Positions 49,728-56,798 of a stretch of 64,000 nucleotides of DNA are shown one piece after another. A model generated the notes under the pieces. That model worked only from the letters and a program-made list of their open reading frames with translations. It was not told where the DNA came from and did not search any database. The DNA is from Guillardia theta CCMP2712 (lineage: Eukaryota > Protista > Cryptophyta). Positions within the stretch are counted from its first letter, which is position 1, and every line of letters starts with the position of its first letter. The position numbers and the translations under genes were made by a program. The stretch covers positions 6,852-70,851 of the forward strand of contig NW_005434615.1 in NCBI RefSeq assembly GCF_000315625.1. Direction: 5' to 3'.

Positions 49728-50777
49728 TTATCCCGACCTCTCTAGCTTTGGTCGAGTCATCAAGTAATACACAAGGCCGAAGAACGGAACAGACCTGGCA
49801 ATGAAGAGCGCAGAATCGTTTCTGTATCCTCTCCTTCTCATATCATCGGGGACTAGCCAACCCTGGAAGATCCAAAAGACCAGACTGTCGACTGCGAAGG
49901 AATGTGCAAGGCGGTCCGAGGAGGAGACGAACTGCCATAAAGTTTCCAGCCGGGTCGCGGCATCCCCATACTCTGCTCCTCTGGCATATGCCCCCCATAA
50001 AACTGACACTACGAACACAGAGGTAAGCAAGAGAGGCAGCGCCTTGCTCTCTGAGATTCTCAGCTCGGCATCGCTACCCTGCGTATCAACTGCCCCGGAC
50101 TCTTGCAATTTTTGGAAGGACTCTCGCAAGCCCAGGTAGGGAAGATAGAATACGTTGGTCAAGAATGCTGTTCCTATCATGAAGGGCAGCATCGGAACTT
50201 TCTGCTTGTTTCCATCCGATAGGAATCCGAAGAAGAGTGCTCCCCATGCAACCACAATGTTGAAGAAAGCCTCCAACGCTGGGTGGAGATTCGGTGAGAA
50301 GTCAGGGAATATAGCCGGCATGATGAACCAGAAGTTAAAGCTCAAGTTGATTGCTTCCAAGGTGACAGGCCAGCCAATATTGCACATCTCTCCTGTTTGA
50401 CCCCCACATGGAGCATCGCTGAAGAATACATGGAAGATGTAAAGCACCCAGGTTGACCAAACAGCAATCTTTGGGAGGAGCTCGGAGTACCCCATCTTCT
50501 CTTCTACGCTATTATCACGATTATCATCAAGATTCGCCCTTATCCTGGTTCTTCGCAGATGACGTGAGGGTGTAAGTGAGACGCGTGTTGTCCGTGGTGA
50601 GCCAAGCATTTGAGACAATTTTTGAGCAGACAACCCCGGCAGGGATGATGTTCTGACTGAGAGCATAAGGGGAGGTGGCCGGGCTATCATGCTTGATCCT
50701 GCTGCCGTGGCATGAAGAAAGCCCTCTGCGCCGGTACCAGCGCTGCATGCCAGCAGCATGAGAATCCACCACGCCAT
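49728..50777 (-). CDS. Multi-pass membrane protein, probably plastid-targeted (DUF2834-like)
   Basis: Signal peptide ending AEG-F, a Ser/Arg-rich transit-like region and about 6 TM helices, including HPALEAFFNIVVAW...FYLPYLGLR. Confidence 0.75.
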   Translation of the reverse strand: MAWWILMLLACSAGTGAEGFLHATAAGSSMIARPPPLMLSVRTSSLPGLSAQKLSQMLGSPRTTRVSLTPSRHLRRTRIRANLDDNRDNSVEEKMGYSELLPKIAVWSTWVLYIFHVFFSDAPCGGQTGEMCNIGWPVTLEAINLSFNFWFIMPAIFPDFSPNLHPALEAFFNIVVAWGALFFGFLSDGNKQKVPMLPFMIGTAFLTNVFYLPYLGLRESFQKLQESGAVDTQGSDAELRISESKALPLLLTSVFVVSVLWGAYARGAEYGDAATRLETLWQFVSSSDRLAHSFAVDSLVFWIFQGWLVPDDMRRRGYRNDSALFIARSVPFFGLVYYLMTRPKLERSG

Positions 50778-50844
50778 GTTCGTTTACTAGTCTGTGCAAT
50801 CAGTAATCACCCCTCCTTCTCAGCATCCACAGTGTTCGATCCAT

Positions 50845-53800
50845 GGGTAGGGTACTCACAAAGCAAAAATCGGGACAACTAATGTTAAATTCAACACATT
50901 TATCAGCTTTCTTTAAACTCTGAAAGTTTTCTGTGATTTTTATTGTTTTCACGTGTGAAAATCCAAATTGGGCCATTTGCACTCAACAGATCATGTTTAG
51001 CATGTCATCAAGACAGTGATTGATGCGAATATCTCCTCCATCACCATCATGCCAGGTGGCAGCTCATACTCAGCACGGCATCTCACAACCTCAACTCCTG
51101 ATTTCCTCGTAGCGAGACTCATCATTTCCAACATTCCACTTCCACATGAGGGCTTAACACACATGTATCAACTCAACAATGATTTCATTCAGGGACGAAC
51201 TGTACATGCTCTACACTACGTGCTCTGGAGCATGTCTGCATACGTCCTTTGTCCACTCTCCCTATTTCTATTTGCCTCTGCCTGATGGTCTTCAACTGCC
51301 AGCGACTTCTCAATGCTAACCTGCTGGCGATATTCCAGCAAGTGCTTGTAGTATGTGATGTATGAGTATTGCGAGTACCTCTTTCTCTGTGCCATCGTCG
51401 TCCATGCATCTTCTCCGTACGCCCTTTCCACCAGTGTACGGAACCCAATTCTGTAACACTGACAGAAGTTGTGAGACATAATTGCCTCGTTTCCTTGCAG
51501 TACTCCTTGCTCTCGGCATATGTTTTCCACCATGGTCATCACAAGATATGCTTTGTATACATTCTTCCTCGTGTTCTCATCCTTCACGTCTGCGGAGAAA
51601 GGAACCTGACTGAGGTGCTTTAAGGGCCGAATCCTCCTCACTTGTCCTTCCACGATGACATCTTGCCCCAAATTCCACCACATGAACATATTTCGAACTC
51701 TGCAACGCAAAGGAAATGGCCAACCCAACGGGATCATATGTCTGCCAGGCCCGCATCCTTCCCATTCGAAGTCATCCCCTCCAACTTGTATCTCACCGTT
51801 GCCATCATTCCCCTGTCCTTGTGATGAAACCAGAACCGCGTTCCTCTCCGGTGTCCCCTCCCTGCTCACTTCTGCACCTTCCTCCGATTCACTCTCATTC
51901 AATCTTCCATTCGAGCCAGCATCTGACATCACGTTGCTCACCCCATGTGCCATCATAACATGGCCTGCTCCACCCAGTACCATCTGTCGCATAGCTTCAC
52001 CCACGGCGGCCTGCACCTGCTCCCCTATATTGCCCATCTGCTGCACCTGTTGTCCTATATTGGCAAGTTGTTGCATGACGATGCGGAAAGCATCTGTGAA
52101 GTCCATGTTTCCAGATGTAACCTGCCCTCCACTAGGACCTGGTACATCCCTCCTCCATCCAGCAACAAAACCTAAATTCGTTCGCAGTTCCTCCCTGATT
52201 ACAGTTTTGAAATCGTCAAACTTCTGGTCCAGTTCTTTCATCTTCTCATCCATCTTCTTCTCGATTGCCTTCATCTTTACATCCATCTTCTCCTCGATTA
52301 CCTTCATCTCCTCCTTGATGGCATCTCGCACTTCAACCCTCATATCTTTCATGCCTTTCAATATTTCTGTCTTGGTTGGAGTACCACTAGCTGACATGCC
52401 GCAATGGGTACATCTGTGCGAACACACGATGATATGCTCTCGCAATGACATCAGCCTTGCCATACTGCCTTGTCCAAACATTCCGAACATCGGTATGCCC
52501 CATATGTCATCGTTGCTGTGCGGAAACCATTCCTGTAGGGTTGGAAGGTGCCATAAGACACTTGCAAGGAAGAAGCGGATACACTTTTGAAATCCTGCCG
52601 GGAAACTTCTGTAACCTGATATGAACCTCTCCCAGCCGATCTCTTCTATTTGCTTCAATCCTTCCGTTGTGAAGTGGGGGGGAAGTACAGCAAAGTCTGC
52701 GGTTCCGCTGTCGTTGCCAGCAAGAATCCTGCCTGCGAACTGGTCTCCACCCGTTTCACCAAGGATATAACGATCCTGCGTCTCTCCTGCCACAATTTTA
52801 CTTCTTATCCCTGTTCCGCGATTTCATAGCAGACATACCTATCTTCCAGTTGGCTCGGATATACACTGTTGGAGCTCCTGGCAACAGTCCTGTCACTAAC
52901 AATCGGCTGACAAACAGCAGTGCAAGTCGCACCGGGACCATCCATCATACCCAGCAAATGGGTGATTCCTCCCTTCCGCAATGAATGGGTCCCAGCATTG
53001 TCCAAGTTGCCATGCTGGTCCTTTGCAGCTTGAGATGCCATGCGTTGCATGAGCTGTGCATACCTCTGTTTCTGATCCCTCCCCATCAGCAGCTTGTTTC
53101 CCTCCCTGGCAAGGAAGATGCCTCGGGTGGCAAAGGTGTACAAAGCAAGAGTAAGGACTGGACATATTTCTGGATTGTGGGGTGCGGCAAACAAATGCTT
53201 GATCCTGGTGTTTTTCAAGTCAGTCCCAATCCCGGCTTGGTCTGTTTTGGTGCGCAAAAGTACTACTTTCATGTAATCATTCTCCCAATCAAAGTGCTGT
53301 AGATGCAAGATATCAAGGCTCTCACTCCCGCAGATGAGATTCCACATGAGACATGTGCATGTCCATCCAAATATCCACGTGTCTCCGGGTGCTGTGCTAC
53401 CTTGACGAGGTTTCTGGTTCCTAAACGTTCTGCACAGGCAGATATACTCATCCATTCTTATCCCCGTTCTGCCTTCATGAATGCGCATGACTCCTCGAGA
53501 TTTCTTCTCTGTAACTACTTTCGTGTACGACTCCATGCAACGGTCTAACACCTCGTCTATACACATTGCTGCTTCTCCTTCTGGCATGTCCCTGGCTACA
53601 AATTCCATGTGTCTACATTGGTACAGGTACTTCAACGCACTTTTGTAGCCTCGTATCGTAGACACGGCTACTGTCGGTTTGTCCGCTGCATTGGTTACAA
53701 AATTCACGTCTTGAATGCCAGTGAGTCCCACTACCAATTCAACATCATTGCTGGTGGTGCCTGCTTGTTCTTCAACGTCATCATCCATCTCGACATCATC

Positions 53801-54785
53801 ATGTTCATCTTCATATGAAGCATGCGCCTGTGATGGGCCTGCTTCATGCGCCTGTGATGGGCCTGCTTCATCTTCGGCTTCATCATCGACTTCAATGTGA
53901 TCGCCATTGATCTGCATGGTTGGGTGGGTGCCCTTCTTCATACGTTTCGCTTTTGATTGCTTGATCTTCTCCCTGACCCGCTCCTTTTGCGACAAATAAC
54001 CGAAGAATGCTACTAATGCATCGTATGGCAATGGCAAAACAAGGTCGTCCAAGGTTTCATTCAGAGCTGCATGATATCGTGGGTGAGACCTGAAGAAAGC
54101 TATGATAGCATGAATGCGGTATGCGTAGTTCCTCTGCGTACTGAGACTGACCACTTTTGACTGCAATTCTCGAAATGCCTGCATGTTCAAATCAGGTCCC
54201 CCTGAACCGATGACCCTGCGATCCTGGAAGACATGCAATAATTCTTCGTCGGTGCGAGCACTGACCCGCCGTTTATTCGAAGGTCTACTTTGAGTCACGG
54301 TGTTGTTATGGGCTCCTCGGTTGCATTGCCCACAATAGTTCATATCATCTGTGCCTTTCAGAGTACTAGCACAGAGATGATGGAAGGGTTTGTTGCAATA
54401 CTGGCAGACTTTCAACTGAGCCTCAGGTTGCCCTCGCATAACACATGAGGCTTCATACAAGCATGTCTGCCTAGCTGGTGCCGACATTCTTTGCCAGGAT
54501 GCAAATGTTCTCCCTGATATGGGTACTTGCGATTGTGGTGGAATCTGTTTGTCCTCGGCAATGCGACGAGGAATGATGCCCGGCAGTTTTCCCCTGGTTT
54601 GATCGCATAGATACAGCTCGCCTCAGAACTTTTACCTATATGACATCAAAGACAGCAATAGACCTGTAGATCAATCCAAGACTTCATCGGAATTTTGCGA
54701 GACCTGCGACCCGAAATAGAGAAAATGATGTGCTGAGCAAGCTACGAACATGTTCTGCTGAGTCTTCTGTGAGATTGAGGGTAGG
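50845..54785 (-). mobile_element. Crypton-type tyrosine-recombinase DNA transposon (boundaries inferred)
   Basis: Encodes an intron-containing tyrosine recombinase with no RT. Candidate 7-bp terminal direct repeats GGGTAGG at 50845-50851 and 54779-54785. Confidence 0.8.
51216..54487 (-). CDS. Crypton tyrosine recombinase (1,054 aa after splicing): PHD-like finger, YR domain, coiled coil and GCR1-like C-terminal domain
   Basis: Removing introns 52878-52932 and 52787-52838 gives GTHSLRKGGITHLLGMMDGPGAPTVYIRANWKIGETQDRYILGETGGDQFAGRILAG. Other motifs: GYKSALKYLY, KTDQAG, NPEICPVLTLALY. Confidence 0.9.
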
Positions 54786-54824
54786 AGGAGGAGGAGGAGG
54801 AGGAGGAGGAGGAGGAGGAGGAGG
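54783..54824. repeat. (GGA)n microsatellite
   Basis: Direct sequence. Confidence 0.95.
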
Positions 54825-55099
54825 GACAAGATCAAGAAGAGAGGGACCAGATGAGATGGAGGAGTGAGTAGCAGTATCGATGATGAGCAAAACTATCGTG
54901 ACGGGGAGGGCAATGAGGGTAGCCTGAGCGCTAGGACGATAGATGTAACATGGTCGGAATCAACAGGAGAGGGACGAGGCAGAGAGAAGGTCATCAAAAG
55001 AGCACGTCTTGTCAACTTTTAACGATGAATCACTCACTGCTTTGCGTTTACAGGTTCCTTCCTTCAACTGCCCTCCCTGATTGATCGCTTGAGGGCGCG

Positions 55100-56798
55100 A
55101 TGCCCTGGACATCGGAGAGGCCCAGCTCCACAGGAAGCAAGAGCAGGGAAAGCACCACGGTGACTGTGACGAAGAGGGTGGGCCTTGAGTCCCAACCACT
55201 CCTGGCTCAGGATGGTTCTGCTCTGCATTCCAAGGACCACGAGGGATACAACACGATCACCATGATGAAGCCTGAGAGAGACCCGATGAAGTCGGCTCAT
55301 CCCGTCATGATGCTGGAGTCCAGCAAGAATCCGTTGCATTCGATGAGCACAGAAGTTCAGCTTGTCTGTTTCTGCTCAGGGTGGGTAATGTTCTTAGAGG
55401 GGATCAACGGCATGTCGGGGTTGGCCACGAGCTACTTCTTTAAGGAGACTCTCAAGGTGGAGCTGCGGTCCTCTCATCCATAGGCTCCATCACCTCTCTT
55501 CCCTGGACGTGCAAGCCCTTGTACGGATTCATATCGGACGCATACCCGATCTGGGGGTATAGGAGGAAACCTTACCTCCTCATCGCGGGCATCCTGGGGA
55601 GCATCTCCTGGTTCCTCATGTCCAAGTACGTGACCACCGTCTTCCTTAGTGGCATCTGCATGACTCTCGGCTCGGGGGCCATCGCAGTGGCCAACGTGAT
55701 CGCCGAGGCGATGGTGTGTGAGAAGAGTCGAGGGGAGACGCAGGAGTACGCATCCAGGCTTCAGAGCATCATATACACGGGTCAAGCGGTTGGCTCGATC
55801 ATCGCTGCATGGACAGGAGGATATCTCTTGACGTTCATGTCTGATCGCCAGGTGTTCCTCTTGGTTGCAAGCTTCCCGCTGTCGTTGATTGTCATCGCAT
55901 TCATTGTTCCGGAAGAGAGATACCACGGGAACCATGTTAAGGAGCGAAGTGAAATCAACGACAAGCTGCTGCAGCTGTGGAACGCGTTCAAACAGCCGCA
56001 GATATGGAGGCCTTGCGCATTCATCTTCATGCTCAATGCCACACCGGCTACGGGAGCGACCTGGTTCTACTTCTACACTGACGTGCTCAAGTTTTCATCG
56101 GAGTTTCTCGGAACCATCGGCCTGGTCGGGTCATGTTTCACTCTCGCTGGAGTCTTTCTCTTTGACGCAACGATGCGCAAGGCGTCCTTCAGGCCTGTCT
56201 TTCTTTGGTCCACCATTGTCAGCACCATCCTCGGCCTCTCTCAGCTCATCCTCGTCTTCCGATATAACCTCGTCCTGGGCATCCCCGACTCGGTCTTCTG
56301 CTTGGGTGAGAGCGCCATCCTGTCCATCGTCGGGTGGATCTGTACGATGCCGGTGCTCGTTCTGGCCGCAAGGTTGTGCCCCGAGGGGATGGAGGGGACG
56401 ATGTACGCGCTGATCATGAGCATCAACAATCTCGGGGGGATCGTGGGTTCACAACTAGGGGCCGTCTTGACGACCTGGTACGTTTCTTGACCTCCCCCTC
56501 TGTACCTGAAGTCTGATTGCAGGTTGGGAGTGACTGAGCAGAATCTGGGCAACTTCTGGCTTCTGGTGCTGATCTGCAACTTGTCGACTTTTCTTCCTCT
56601 GGTAAGTCACTGCTAGTCGTCCTCCTTCAGCTGATCAGATCCCTACCCACAGCTTTTATCAATTGGATCCCCGAGGACGATCCTCAGGTGCTCGAGGAAA
56701 CCACCGCACAGGTGAACCTTGCTGTCGTGAGGAGATCGAACCCTCACGGTGTCCTCTCACAGGCATCGGAGGTGGACATCAAGAGCGGTCTCGTCTGA
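55100..56798 (+). CDS. BT1-family folate/biopterin transporter (MFS); apparent 1-nt frameshift at ~55463
   Basis: Motifs LPWTCKPLYGFISDAYPIWGYRRKPY, FYFYTDVLKFSSEFLG and LAARLCPEGMEGTMYALIMSINNLG. The start codon is uncertain. Confidence 0.9.

Follow-up and report, generated by a model that had tools for sequence, protein, structure and literature searches.

What do two long minus-strand open reading frames (ORFs) in a 64,000-nucleotide stretch of DNA from the alga Guillardia theta (hereafter, the window) encode, and is the locus that contains them mobile? The ORFs lie at 52805..54487 (560 amino acids) and 51216..52793 (525 amino acids), and an initial annotation, made from the sequence, proposed that they are parts of a single gene of an intron-containing Crypton, a tyrosine recombinase transposon, in a genome that is probably that of a cryptophyte. 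The host is indeed a cryptophyte, G. theta CCMP2712, as all 5001/5001 compared bases are identical to JH993023.1 (locus L004, 48067-68807, GCA_000315625.1). The locus is very probably one copy of a ~3.6- to 3.9-kb Crypton-type DNA transposon, the sole gene of which consists of three exons and encodes a tyrosine recombinase of 1,054 amino acids. As anticipated, annotation at the level of ORFs misses this gene: the public annotation cuts it into two fragment models of 225 and 170 amino acids (the latter is GUITHDRAFT_153805), and most of exon 1 has no public gene model.

The two ORFs are joined through two GT-AG introns and a 39-nucleotide (nt) middle exon, and the spliced product contains zero internal stops. 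The parts of the gene are as follows:

52933..54487, minus strand: exon 1, encoding amino acids 1-518 plus 1 nt; PHD-like zinc finger, SAM-like N-terminal domain, acidic linker, and the larger part of the catalytic domain
52878..52932, minus strand: intron 1, 55 nt, GT..AG, phase 1; joint present in an RNA contig of sequencing run X3
52839..52877, minus strand: exon 2, 39 nt, encoding amino acids 519-532 in part; its product is APTVYIRANWKI, including W529
52787..52838, minus strand: intron 2, 52 nt, GT..AG, phase 1
51216..52786, minus strand: coding part of exon 3, amino acids 532-1054, with the stop codon at 51216-51218
51168, minus strand: poly(A) addition site, 48 nt past the stop codon, marked by 3 raw RNA reads of run X23, with a T run before 51168 on the plus strand

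Two independent lines of evidence demonstrate that the splicing is real. Across the junctions, the window protein reads HSLRKGGITHLLGMMDGPG/APTVYIRANWKI/GETQDRYILGETGGDQFAGR, and this product aligns without gaps across both of them with at least 10 uninterrupted homologues, for example, P0001, which reads HSLRKGGISHLLAFLEGPGVPTVYIRANWRIGDTEDRYIVGGAGGDQMCGR. The second line comes from reads and contigs of several sequencing runs, which were mapped on window positions 50300-55300. Run X3 behaves as RNA, with zero depth in intergenic bins and neighboring transcripts that stop at gene boundaries; runs X1 and X2 show even depth across genes and spacers, as expected of DNA, and contain no spliced joints. 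One X3 contig has both joints at the predicted bases, 52785->52838 (skipping 52) and 52876->52932 (skipping 55), with CT..AC on the plus strand. This contig differs from the window at 7/300 bases and therefore derives from a sister copy. Two other X3 contigs (52958-53110 and 53728-53999) show zero differences from the window in places where sister copies differ by 3-5%, and therefore the window copy itself is probably transcribed. An alternative intron 1 donor located 18 nt upstream (G|GTATGA at 52950), which would give a protein of 1,048 amino acids, was rejected because it removes GMMDGP, a string conserved in relatives.

The spliced protein carries the residues expected of a tyrosine recombinase. 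The K, HxxR, W, and Y motifs named in the initial annotation are found at K414 (KTDQ), H501/R504 (HSLRKG), W529 (RANW), and Y538 (DRY). Exon 1 holds K414, H501, and R504, along with G387 where the first catalytic arginine (Arg I) would be expected. Exon 3 encodes the Tyr538 nucleophile and, beyond it, the GGDQFAGR motif, a helical extension of the catalytic domain, a coiled coil, and a C-terminal domain that is conserved. Thus, the catalytic W and Y do lie on separate exons, W529 in the 39-nt exon and Y538 in exon 3. Searches of Pfam, NCBIfam, and the PDB by sequence gave no significant match with either the ORFs or the family profile, and only weak traces appeared (SAM-like N-terminal at amino acids 106-137 and PHD at amino acids 20-42). 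The Pfam and NCBIfam scans likewise contained no reverse transcriptase, RNase H, or DDE domain, as the initial annotation had stated. DUF3504 (PF12012) had no match in the Pfam scans, and GCR1_C had none even at an expect value (E) of up to 10.

AlphaFold2 was run on residues 1-345 of the G. theta paralogue P0017, rather than on the catalytic domain of the window protein itself, with a 72-sequence alignment as input; P0017 belongs with P0001 to one cluster at ≥90% identity, and in the recombinase region P0001 and the window protein are 58% identical. The P0017 model has a predicted local distance difference test (pLDDT) score of 89.6 and a predicted template modeling (pTM) score of 0.89. Among the PDB entries, the top 50 Foldseek matches of this model comprise only tyrosine recombinases and known derivatives thereof, including Cre (E=5.5e-4), XerH, Flp, Tre, Ndc10, XerA, and an integrase from methicillin-resistant Staphylococcus aureus (MRSA). 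A profile comparison with hhalign gave a statistically weak match between the family and Cre (E=0.073) that is, yet, collinear at all six catalytic positions:

Cre R173: family R73
Cre K201: K-x-K hairpin
Cre H289 and R292: H-S-x-R
Cre W315: R-A-G-W
Cre Y324: D-R-Y

The same comparison of the family with lambda Int produced no match. The protein-language features of the part encoded by exon 1 point to clusters of eukaryotic Tyr recombinases, DUF3504, and NDC10_II. Taken as modeled, the protein family is predicted to have the tyrosine-recombinase fold.

One of the six catalytic residues is changed in the window copy, which therefore does not have the complete R-K-H-R-[H/W]-Y set. The substitution is located as follows:

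53327..53329, minus strand: codon GGG, Gly387, at the position of Arg I (Cre R173), identified in the family alignment and in the hhalign column

In this column, R is present in 72/72 aligned relatives, and a single substitution separates GGG from AGG or CGG. Arg I is required for cleavage in Cre, Flp, and lambda Int, and the window copy is therefore predicted to bind but not cut DNA; it is probably not autonomous. The loss of Arg I was overlooked in the initial annotation. P0001 and P0017, the latter being an ORF of an MMETSP transcript, keep Arg I. A copy of the sister family in JH993012.1 (L001:5408-8639) has an open, spliced frame of 1,041 amino acids in which the HSLR motif reads HSLW (Arg II -> Trp) and DRY reads DQY, unlike P0001 and P0017, which keep HSLR and DRY. 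Because this copy has also been hit in its catalytic site, it is plausible that Gly387 is a private hit of the window copy, and such single hits seem to be recurrent in the catalytic sites of copies that are otherwise open. Near-identical sisters that carry exon 1 were sought with word searches (ORF1 and an extended 605-amino-acid frame), which found nothing closer than 58%, and with a C-terminal query, which found only the window locus and one broken copy; two scans of metagenome contigs of the Joint Genome Institute (JGI) contained no near-identical sister copies.

The locus belongs to a multicopy mobile element and is not a single domesticated gene. The contigs that flank the element have a depth of 71 in run X1 and 4.5 in run X2, and those of its interior have depths of ~400-500 and 35-43, respectively. 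The interior contigs are 95-99% identical to the window, and their depth, ~6-9x that of the flanks in both DNA runs, therefore indicates roughly 6-9 copies; the window itself contains only one. The dispersal of the copies is seen in JH993058.1 (L005), where pieces 95-97% identical to the element occur in rearranged order among unrelated neighbor genes, and one of these pieces retains the 39-nt exon, intron 2, and the 3' end of intron 1.

Several copies are damaged. The JH993058.1 copy is broken into two pieces (L005:3796-4187 and L005:9483-10916) that are 5.3 kb apart and in opposite orientation, and, compared with the window at 51101/51107, it has an additional ~160 bp past its stop codon. 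Internal deletions are present in X1 contigs, one of 172 bp (window 52381-52554) and another of 745 bp (52707-53453), the latter with a 9-nt filler, TTCTGCCTT. Against a single partial sister copy, the ratio of nonsynonymous to synonymous substitution rates (dN/dS) came to 0.16 for 95 conserved codons and to 0.69 for 253 codons in the region of the coiled coil and linker.

The depth profile and the contig ends together define the minimum extent of the repeated unit:

50907..54548, minus strand: repeated unit, minimum extent, 3,642 bp

Single-copy contigs stop at 50936/50942 and resume at 54499, and loose ends are found at 50907 and 54548. On the 3' side, in the sense of the gene, several sister contigs diverge into different flanks exactly at 50907, and the next ~12 bases are still alike (ATA-W-TGTG), which places this end at about 50907-50895. 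On the 5' side, sister coverage of high identity stops at 54548, and a sister contig is then partly similar after an indel (TGTCCTTGGCA versus TGTCCTCGGCA); because the similarity continues past 54548, the true 5' end lies further upstream, somewhere up to ~54770, before a (CCT)n tract at 54770-54837. The outer limits initially given to the element, 50845 and 54785, do not hold as its ends, as positions 50845-50906 are single-copy flank by depth. Neither long terminal repeats (LTRs) nor terminal inverted repeats (TIRs) were found in a repeat search of the unit. Cryptons characteristically have short direct repeats of 4-8 bp at their two ends and no target-site duplication. Two short repeats were rejected as termini, the 7-bp CCTACCC of the initial annotation (50845/54779) and the 8-mer TCACAGAA (50929/54765): both occur at chance frequency for the zones compared and conflict with the depth profile. 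The known Crypton terminal motifs TATGG and TTACTG and their complements are absent from both depth-defined ends, the positions of which are uncertain, and CTGTAAG was not searched. On the plus strand of 50801-54900, TATGG occurs only at 54024, 54307, and 54518, all within the unit.

The G. theta genome contains a sister family, represented by P0001 and P0017 and by loci L001-L003 on three scaffolds, the protein of which is 44% identical to that of the window overall and 58% identical in the catalytic core. The two families have in common three exons with a nearly identical 39-nt exon, the two intron positions (that of intron 1 is the same in copies L001 and L002), the order of domains, the presence of multiple copies, and MMETSP transcripts; they differ in that P0001 and P0017 keep Arg I and in the 44% overall identity. 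Because a family at this distance has the same intron positions, the introns date far back and move along with the element, as would be expected of movement as DNA. The ends of the sister-family copies have CT-rich tandem repeats at the 3' side and a fuzzy 5' onset. The 3' repeats are CT-rich units of ~14 bp (CCATCTCTCCTCTA-like) in a long tandem array, the length of which varies between copies:

L001:8700-8900: CT-rich array zone
L002:8595-8900: CT-rich array zone
L003:8600-8900: CT-rich array zone

The wider family extends far beyond G. theta. When 1.84 billion cluster representatives were searched with a profile built from 11 relatives, 8,189 clusters (50% identity) matched at E<=0.001, of which 1,971 reached E<=1e-30, and among seven family members scanned against Pfam there were zero significant matches. 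From these searches, the recombinase family (P0003-P0182) seems to be eukaryotic, very large, and so far unannotated; one named member comes from the oomycete Lagenidium giganteum. Clustering with DIRS elements or phage integrases would have spoken against a Crypton; the protein belongs instead to this family of more than 8,000 protein clusters that lack reverse transcriptase, and it does not group with elements that carry one. A 698-amino-acid member, P0036 (MGZ8926641.1), is encoded on a 2.9-kb contig binned as a "Nitrososphaeraceae archaeon" metagenome-assembled genome; this is probably a misbinned eukaryotic contig.

Outside the catalytic domain, the protein contains several additional features:

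54323..54463, minus strand: N-terminal Cys/His zinc finger, PHD-like (C9...C55); Pfam PHD E=0.004, below cutoff
53821..53868, minus strand: perfect 24-bp tandem duplication (EAGPSQAH x2) in the acidic linker of exon 1, found by repeat search and translation
51966..52376, minus strand: predicted long coiled coil, amino acids ~669-805; AlphaFold2 helices 137-208 and 229-273 of the exon-3 product
51219..51782, minus strand: conserved, folded C-terminal domain, amino acids ~867-1054; pLDDT >90, conserved across 80 sequences

The PHD-like finger is common to the G. theta sister family (alignment of P0002 and L001) and absent from the distant relatives aligned; the coiled coil, in the alignment, is an insert common only to the sister family. 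The C-terminal domain was modeled within the exon-3 product, for which AlphaFold2 (pLDDT 80) predicts a helical extension of the catalytic domain, the long coiled coil, a disordered stretch, and the well-modeled C-terminal domain. The pattern of the latter is W-x-W-x-G..H-x-V-P...W-x-L-W..G...I-x-P-x-R-x-L. It had no match in the PDB with Foldseek and no accepted match in Pfam, and VIA gave coiled-coil matches to the long helix only. Identity with Mhr1 (PF12829) was considered for window positions 51219-51800 and rejected, as the match (E=0.005) is below cutoff and is limited to the window protein, being absent from four relatives. Structural look-alikes in the ESM Atlas are mostly hypothetical proteins of oomycetes, and one cluster is partly NDC10_II.

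In the protein, a PHD-like zinc finger and a SAM-like DNA-binding domain are thus followed by a Cre/Flp-type catalytic domain, the coiled coil, and finally the conserved C-terminal domain. By analogy with Cryptons and tyrosine recombinases, the family would move as DNA, through excision to a circle and site-specific reinsertion via a short crossover sequence. Movement as DNA would explain the persistence of both introns in the moving element and their presence in a sister family with only 44% identity in protein. The window copy, with Gly387, most likely cannot cleave DNA, and its further movement would depend on sister copies.

Several observations weigh against this interpretation. The hhalign match to Cre is weak, as noted, and the recombinase fold was modeled on P0017, a 58%-identical paralogue, not on the catalytic domain of the window protein. 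Gly387 may be private to the window copy or common to its whole subfamily. The dN/dS signal, which comes from few sites, is mixed. The ends of the element are only roughly placed, and the 7- and 8-mers shared near them occur at chance frequency and off the depth-defined ends. Finally, no empty site or excision circle was seen, mobility being read from copy number and dispersal only.

Other explanations were also considered. The copies could be products of segmental duplication or unequal crossover and not of recombinase-mediated transposition, a scenario that can draw on the lack of sharply defined termini and target sites and on the single sister contig that extends at least 255 letters beyond 54548 on the 5' side. 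We nevertheless consider it highly improbable: several contigs enter different flanks at the same base, 50907, the JH993058.1 copy has unrelated neighbors, and the repeated unit amounts to one gene with short margins resembling untranslated regions, which is the size of published Cryptons (2.8-5.9 kb). The recombinase could also come from a larger element inserted at this site, be it a DIRS-type retroelement or a virus with a YREC integrase (polinton-like virus or virophage), given that polinton-like viruses of cryptophytes often encode tyrosine recombinases (PMC12220804). There is very little to be said for such an element here, and the idea is close to refuted, because the high-depth unit is only ~3.6 kb long and is located between single-copy host genes (a membrane protein and a BT1 transporter), no reverse transcriptase, capsid, or other viral gene is present in or beside it, and spliceosomal introns are common to the families.

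A different possibility concerns the fate of the window copy, which might be a Crypton-derived gene domesticated by the host, catalytically disabled and kept for binding DNA or chromatin, perhaps as a dominant-negative regulator of the active family. In favor of this, the 1,054-amino-acid frame has stayed open although the sister copies differ by 3-5%; RNA contigs identical to the window copy, the loss of Arg I, and the PHD-like finger in the protein point in the same direction. However, only one of the six catalytic residues is changed, the unit is present at 6-9x flank depth and 95-99% identity and is accompanied by broken and deleted copies, and dN/dS reaches 0.69 over the longest comparable stretch. 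Moreover, the open L001 copy also has a catalytic substitution, as random decay predicts, so that domestication seems quite unlikely. A related idea, that the expressed, full-length recombinase without Arg I has been retained as a DNA-binding, noncleaving partner and is not simply decaying, is doubtful as well. If true, the protein could poison or regulate recombination by active sister copies or could represent an early step toward a dead, Crypton-derived host gene. One copy of a Crypton-type DNA transposon, probably no more than a passenger, is the explanation that we prefer.

The surroundings of the element consist of single-copy host genes, namely, that of the membrane protein at 49728-50777 and that of the BT1 transporter, which starts at 55519. 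The (CCT)n tract mentioned above is a microsatellite of ~68 bp, located between the 5' side of the element and the BT1 transporter gene; as a repeat, it was skipped in the read mapping. Opposite exon 3, on the plus strand, lies an antisense ORF of 311 amino acids (window 51655-52590) with many Ser, Pro, and Cys residues, which most likely arises from the codon composition of the sense strand.

This locus would extend Crypton transposons to cryptophyte algae, a host group for which the literature searched contains no such description. In the initial annotation, too, cryptophytes figured as a group in which no Crypton is known to have been described, and this holds for that literature, Repbase being outside the search; the sole paper in it that mentions cryptophytes or Guillardia together with Cryptons is a study of polinton-like viruses that cites Cryptons in passing (PMC12220804). 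The analysis also provides a verified gene model, its splice sites supported by RNA, in place of the two meaningless fragments of the public G. theta annotation. The family has 8,189 matching clusters at 50% identity and no Pfam match in the seven members scanned, so that its profile and predicted fold could be of use in annotating numerous protist genomes. As a transposon, the element is of an expected kind, and the Arg -> Gly change marks the window copy as a probable passenger only.

How does the element compare with known systems? It encodes a tyrosine recombinase, contains no reverse transcriptase, RNase H, or LTR, which sets it apart from DIRS, Ngaro, PAT, and VIPER, and occurs in repeated, dispersed copies. 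The introns are retained in genomic copies, and the 3.6-kb unit is filled by one gene. The element is thus a Crypton in the original, structural sense, and the title under which it was initially described, an intron-containing Crypton, is sustained by the spliced introns, the recombinase fold, the lack of reverse transcriptase, the multiple copies, and the cryptophyte host.

With Cre, Flp, and XerH, the G. theta recombinase has the fold and the collinear catalytic residues in common. It differs from them in sequence (9-15% identity) and in being the product of a eukaryotic gene that has introns, is ~3x longer, and, in the window copy, lacks Arg I. Among the Cryptons, Kojima and Jurka (2011) define the groups CryptonF, CryptonS, CryptonA, and CryptonI (PMC3212892). 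DUF3504 is derived from Crypton tyrosine recombinases (YRs), and Additional file 3 of the same paper aligns yeast genes of the Cbf2/Ndc10 type with Cryptons (PMC3212892). The G. theta element was compared with these groups motif by motif, against the YR-domain rows of Additional file 4 (PMC3212892). It differs from CryptonA and DUF3504 in that PF12012 has no match, a box II of the G-H-R-S type is missing, and W, not H, precedes the Tyr.

Like CryptonF of fungi and oomycetes, the G. theta element is a DNA transposon with a YR only, and the CryptonF string G-D-Q-[LM]-T-G ... L-x-S-L-P resembles GGDQLTGRVLSGLP of the G. theta family. This string, however, precedes the catalytic Tyr in CryptonF and follows it in the G. 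theta element; furthermore, CryptonF has H-A-P-R where G. theta has H-S-x-R-K-G, and CryptonF has a GCR1_C domain, which was not detected in the G. theta element. The initial annotation had held that the motif set and the GDQFxGR tail typify Cryptons. As for the tail, "GDQ..G" is found in the published alignments only in CryptonF rows, before the Tyr, and is read in no CryptonS, CryptonA, or CryptonI row. Goodwin et al. (2003) reportedly described introns in fungal Cryptons as well.

By its motifs, and not by phylogeny, the element appears closest to CryptonS. The members of this group, found in oomycetes and a diatom, lack GCR1_C, have a conserved C-terminal region, and mostly have TATGG termini (PMC3212892); they are 2.8-5.9 kb long and present in 3-30 copies (PMC3212892). 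The G. theta element differs from them in several respects. The sequences are far apart, neither TATGG nor another terminal direct repeat was found at its roughly placed ends, and the host is a cryptophyte. Its W-to-Y spacing is 9 versus 11 in CryptonS, GGDQ..GR follows the Tyr, and the G. theta families add the PHD-like finger and the coiled coil. Conversely, a single YR gene, a 3- to 4-kb unit, few to tens of copies, the lack of GCR1_C, and the presence of some conserved C-terminal region are common to both. The order of motifs is also the same, W-x4-R-x-S, K-x3-[DE]-Q-G, C-P-[LV]-x-A-[IL]-A, [ST]-H-S-x-R-[RK]-G, R-[GA]-x-W, and Y-[VL]-F, and the matching CryptonS strings include C-P-L-x-A-I-A, S-H-S-F-R-R-G-G-A, R-G-A-W, and Y-V-F. 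Finally, both have a link to oomycetes, which in the case of the G. theta element is provided by the mostly oomycete look-alikes in the ESM Atlas and by the relative from Lagenidium giganteum.

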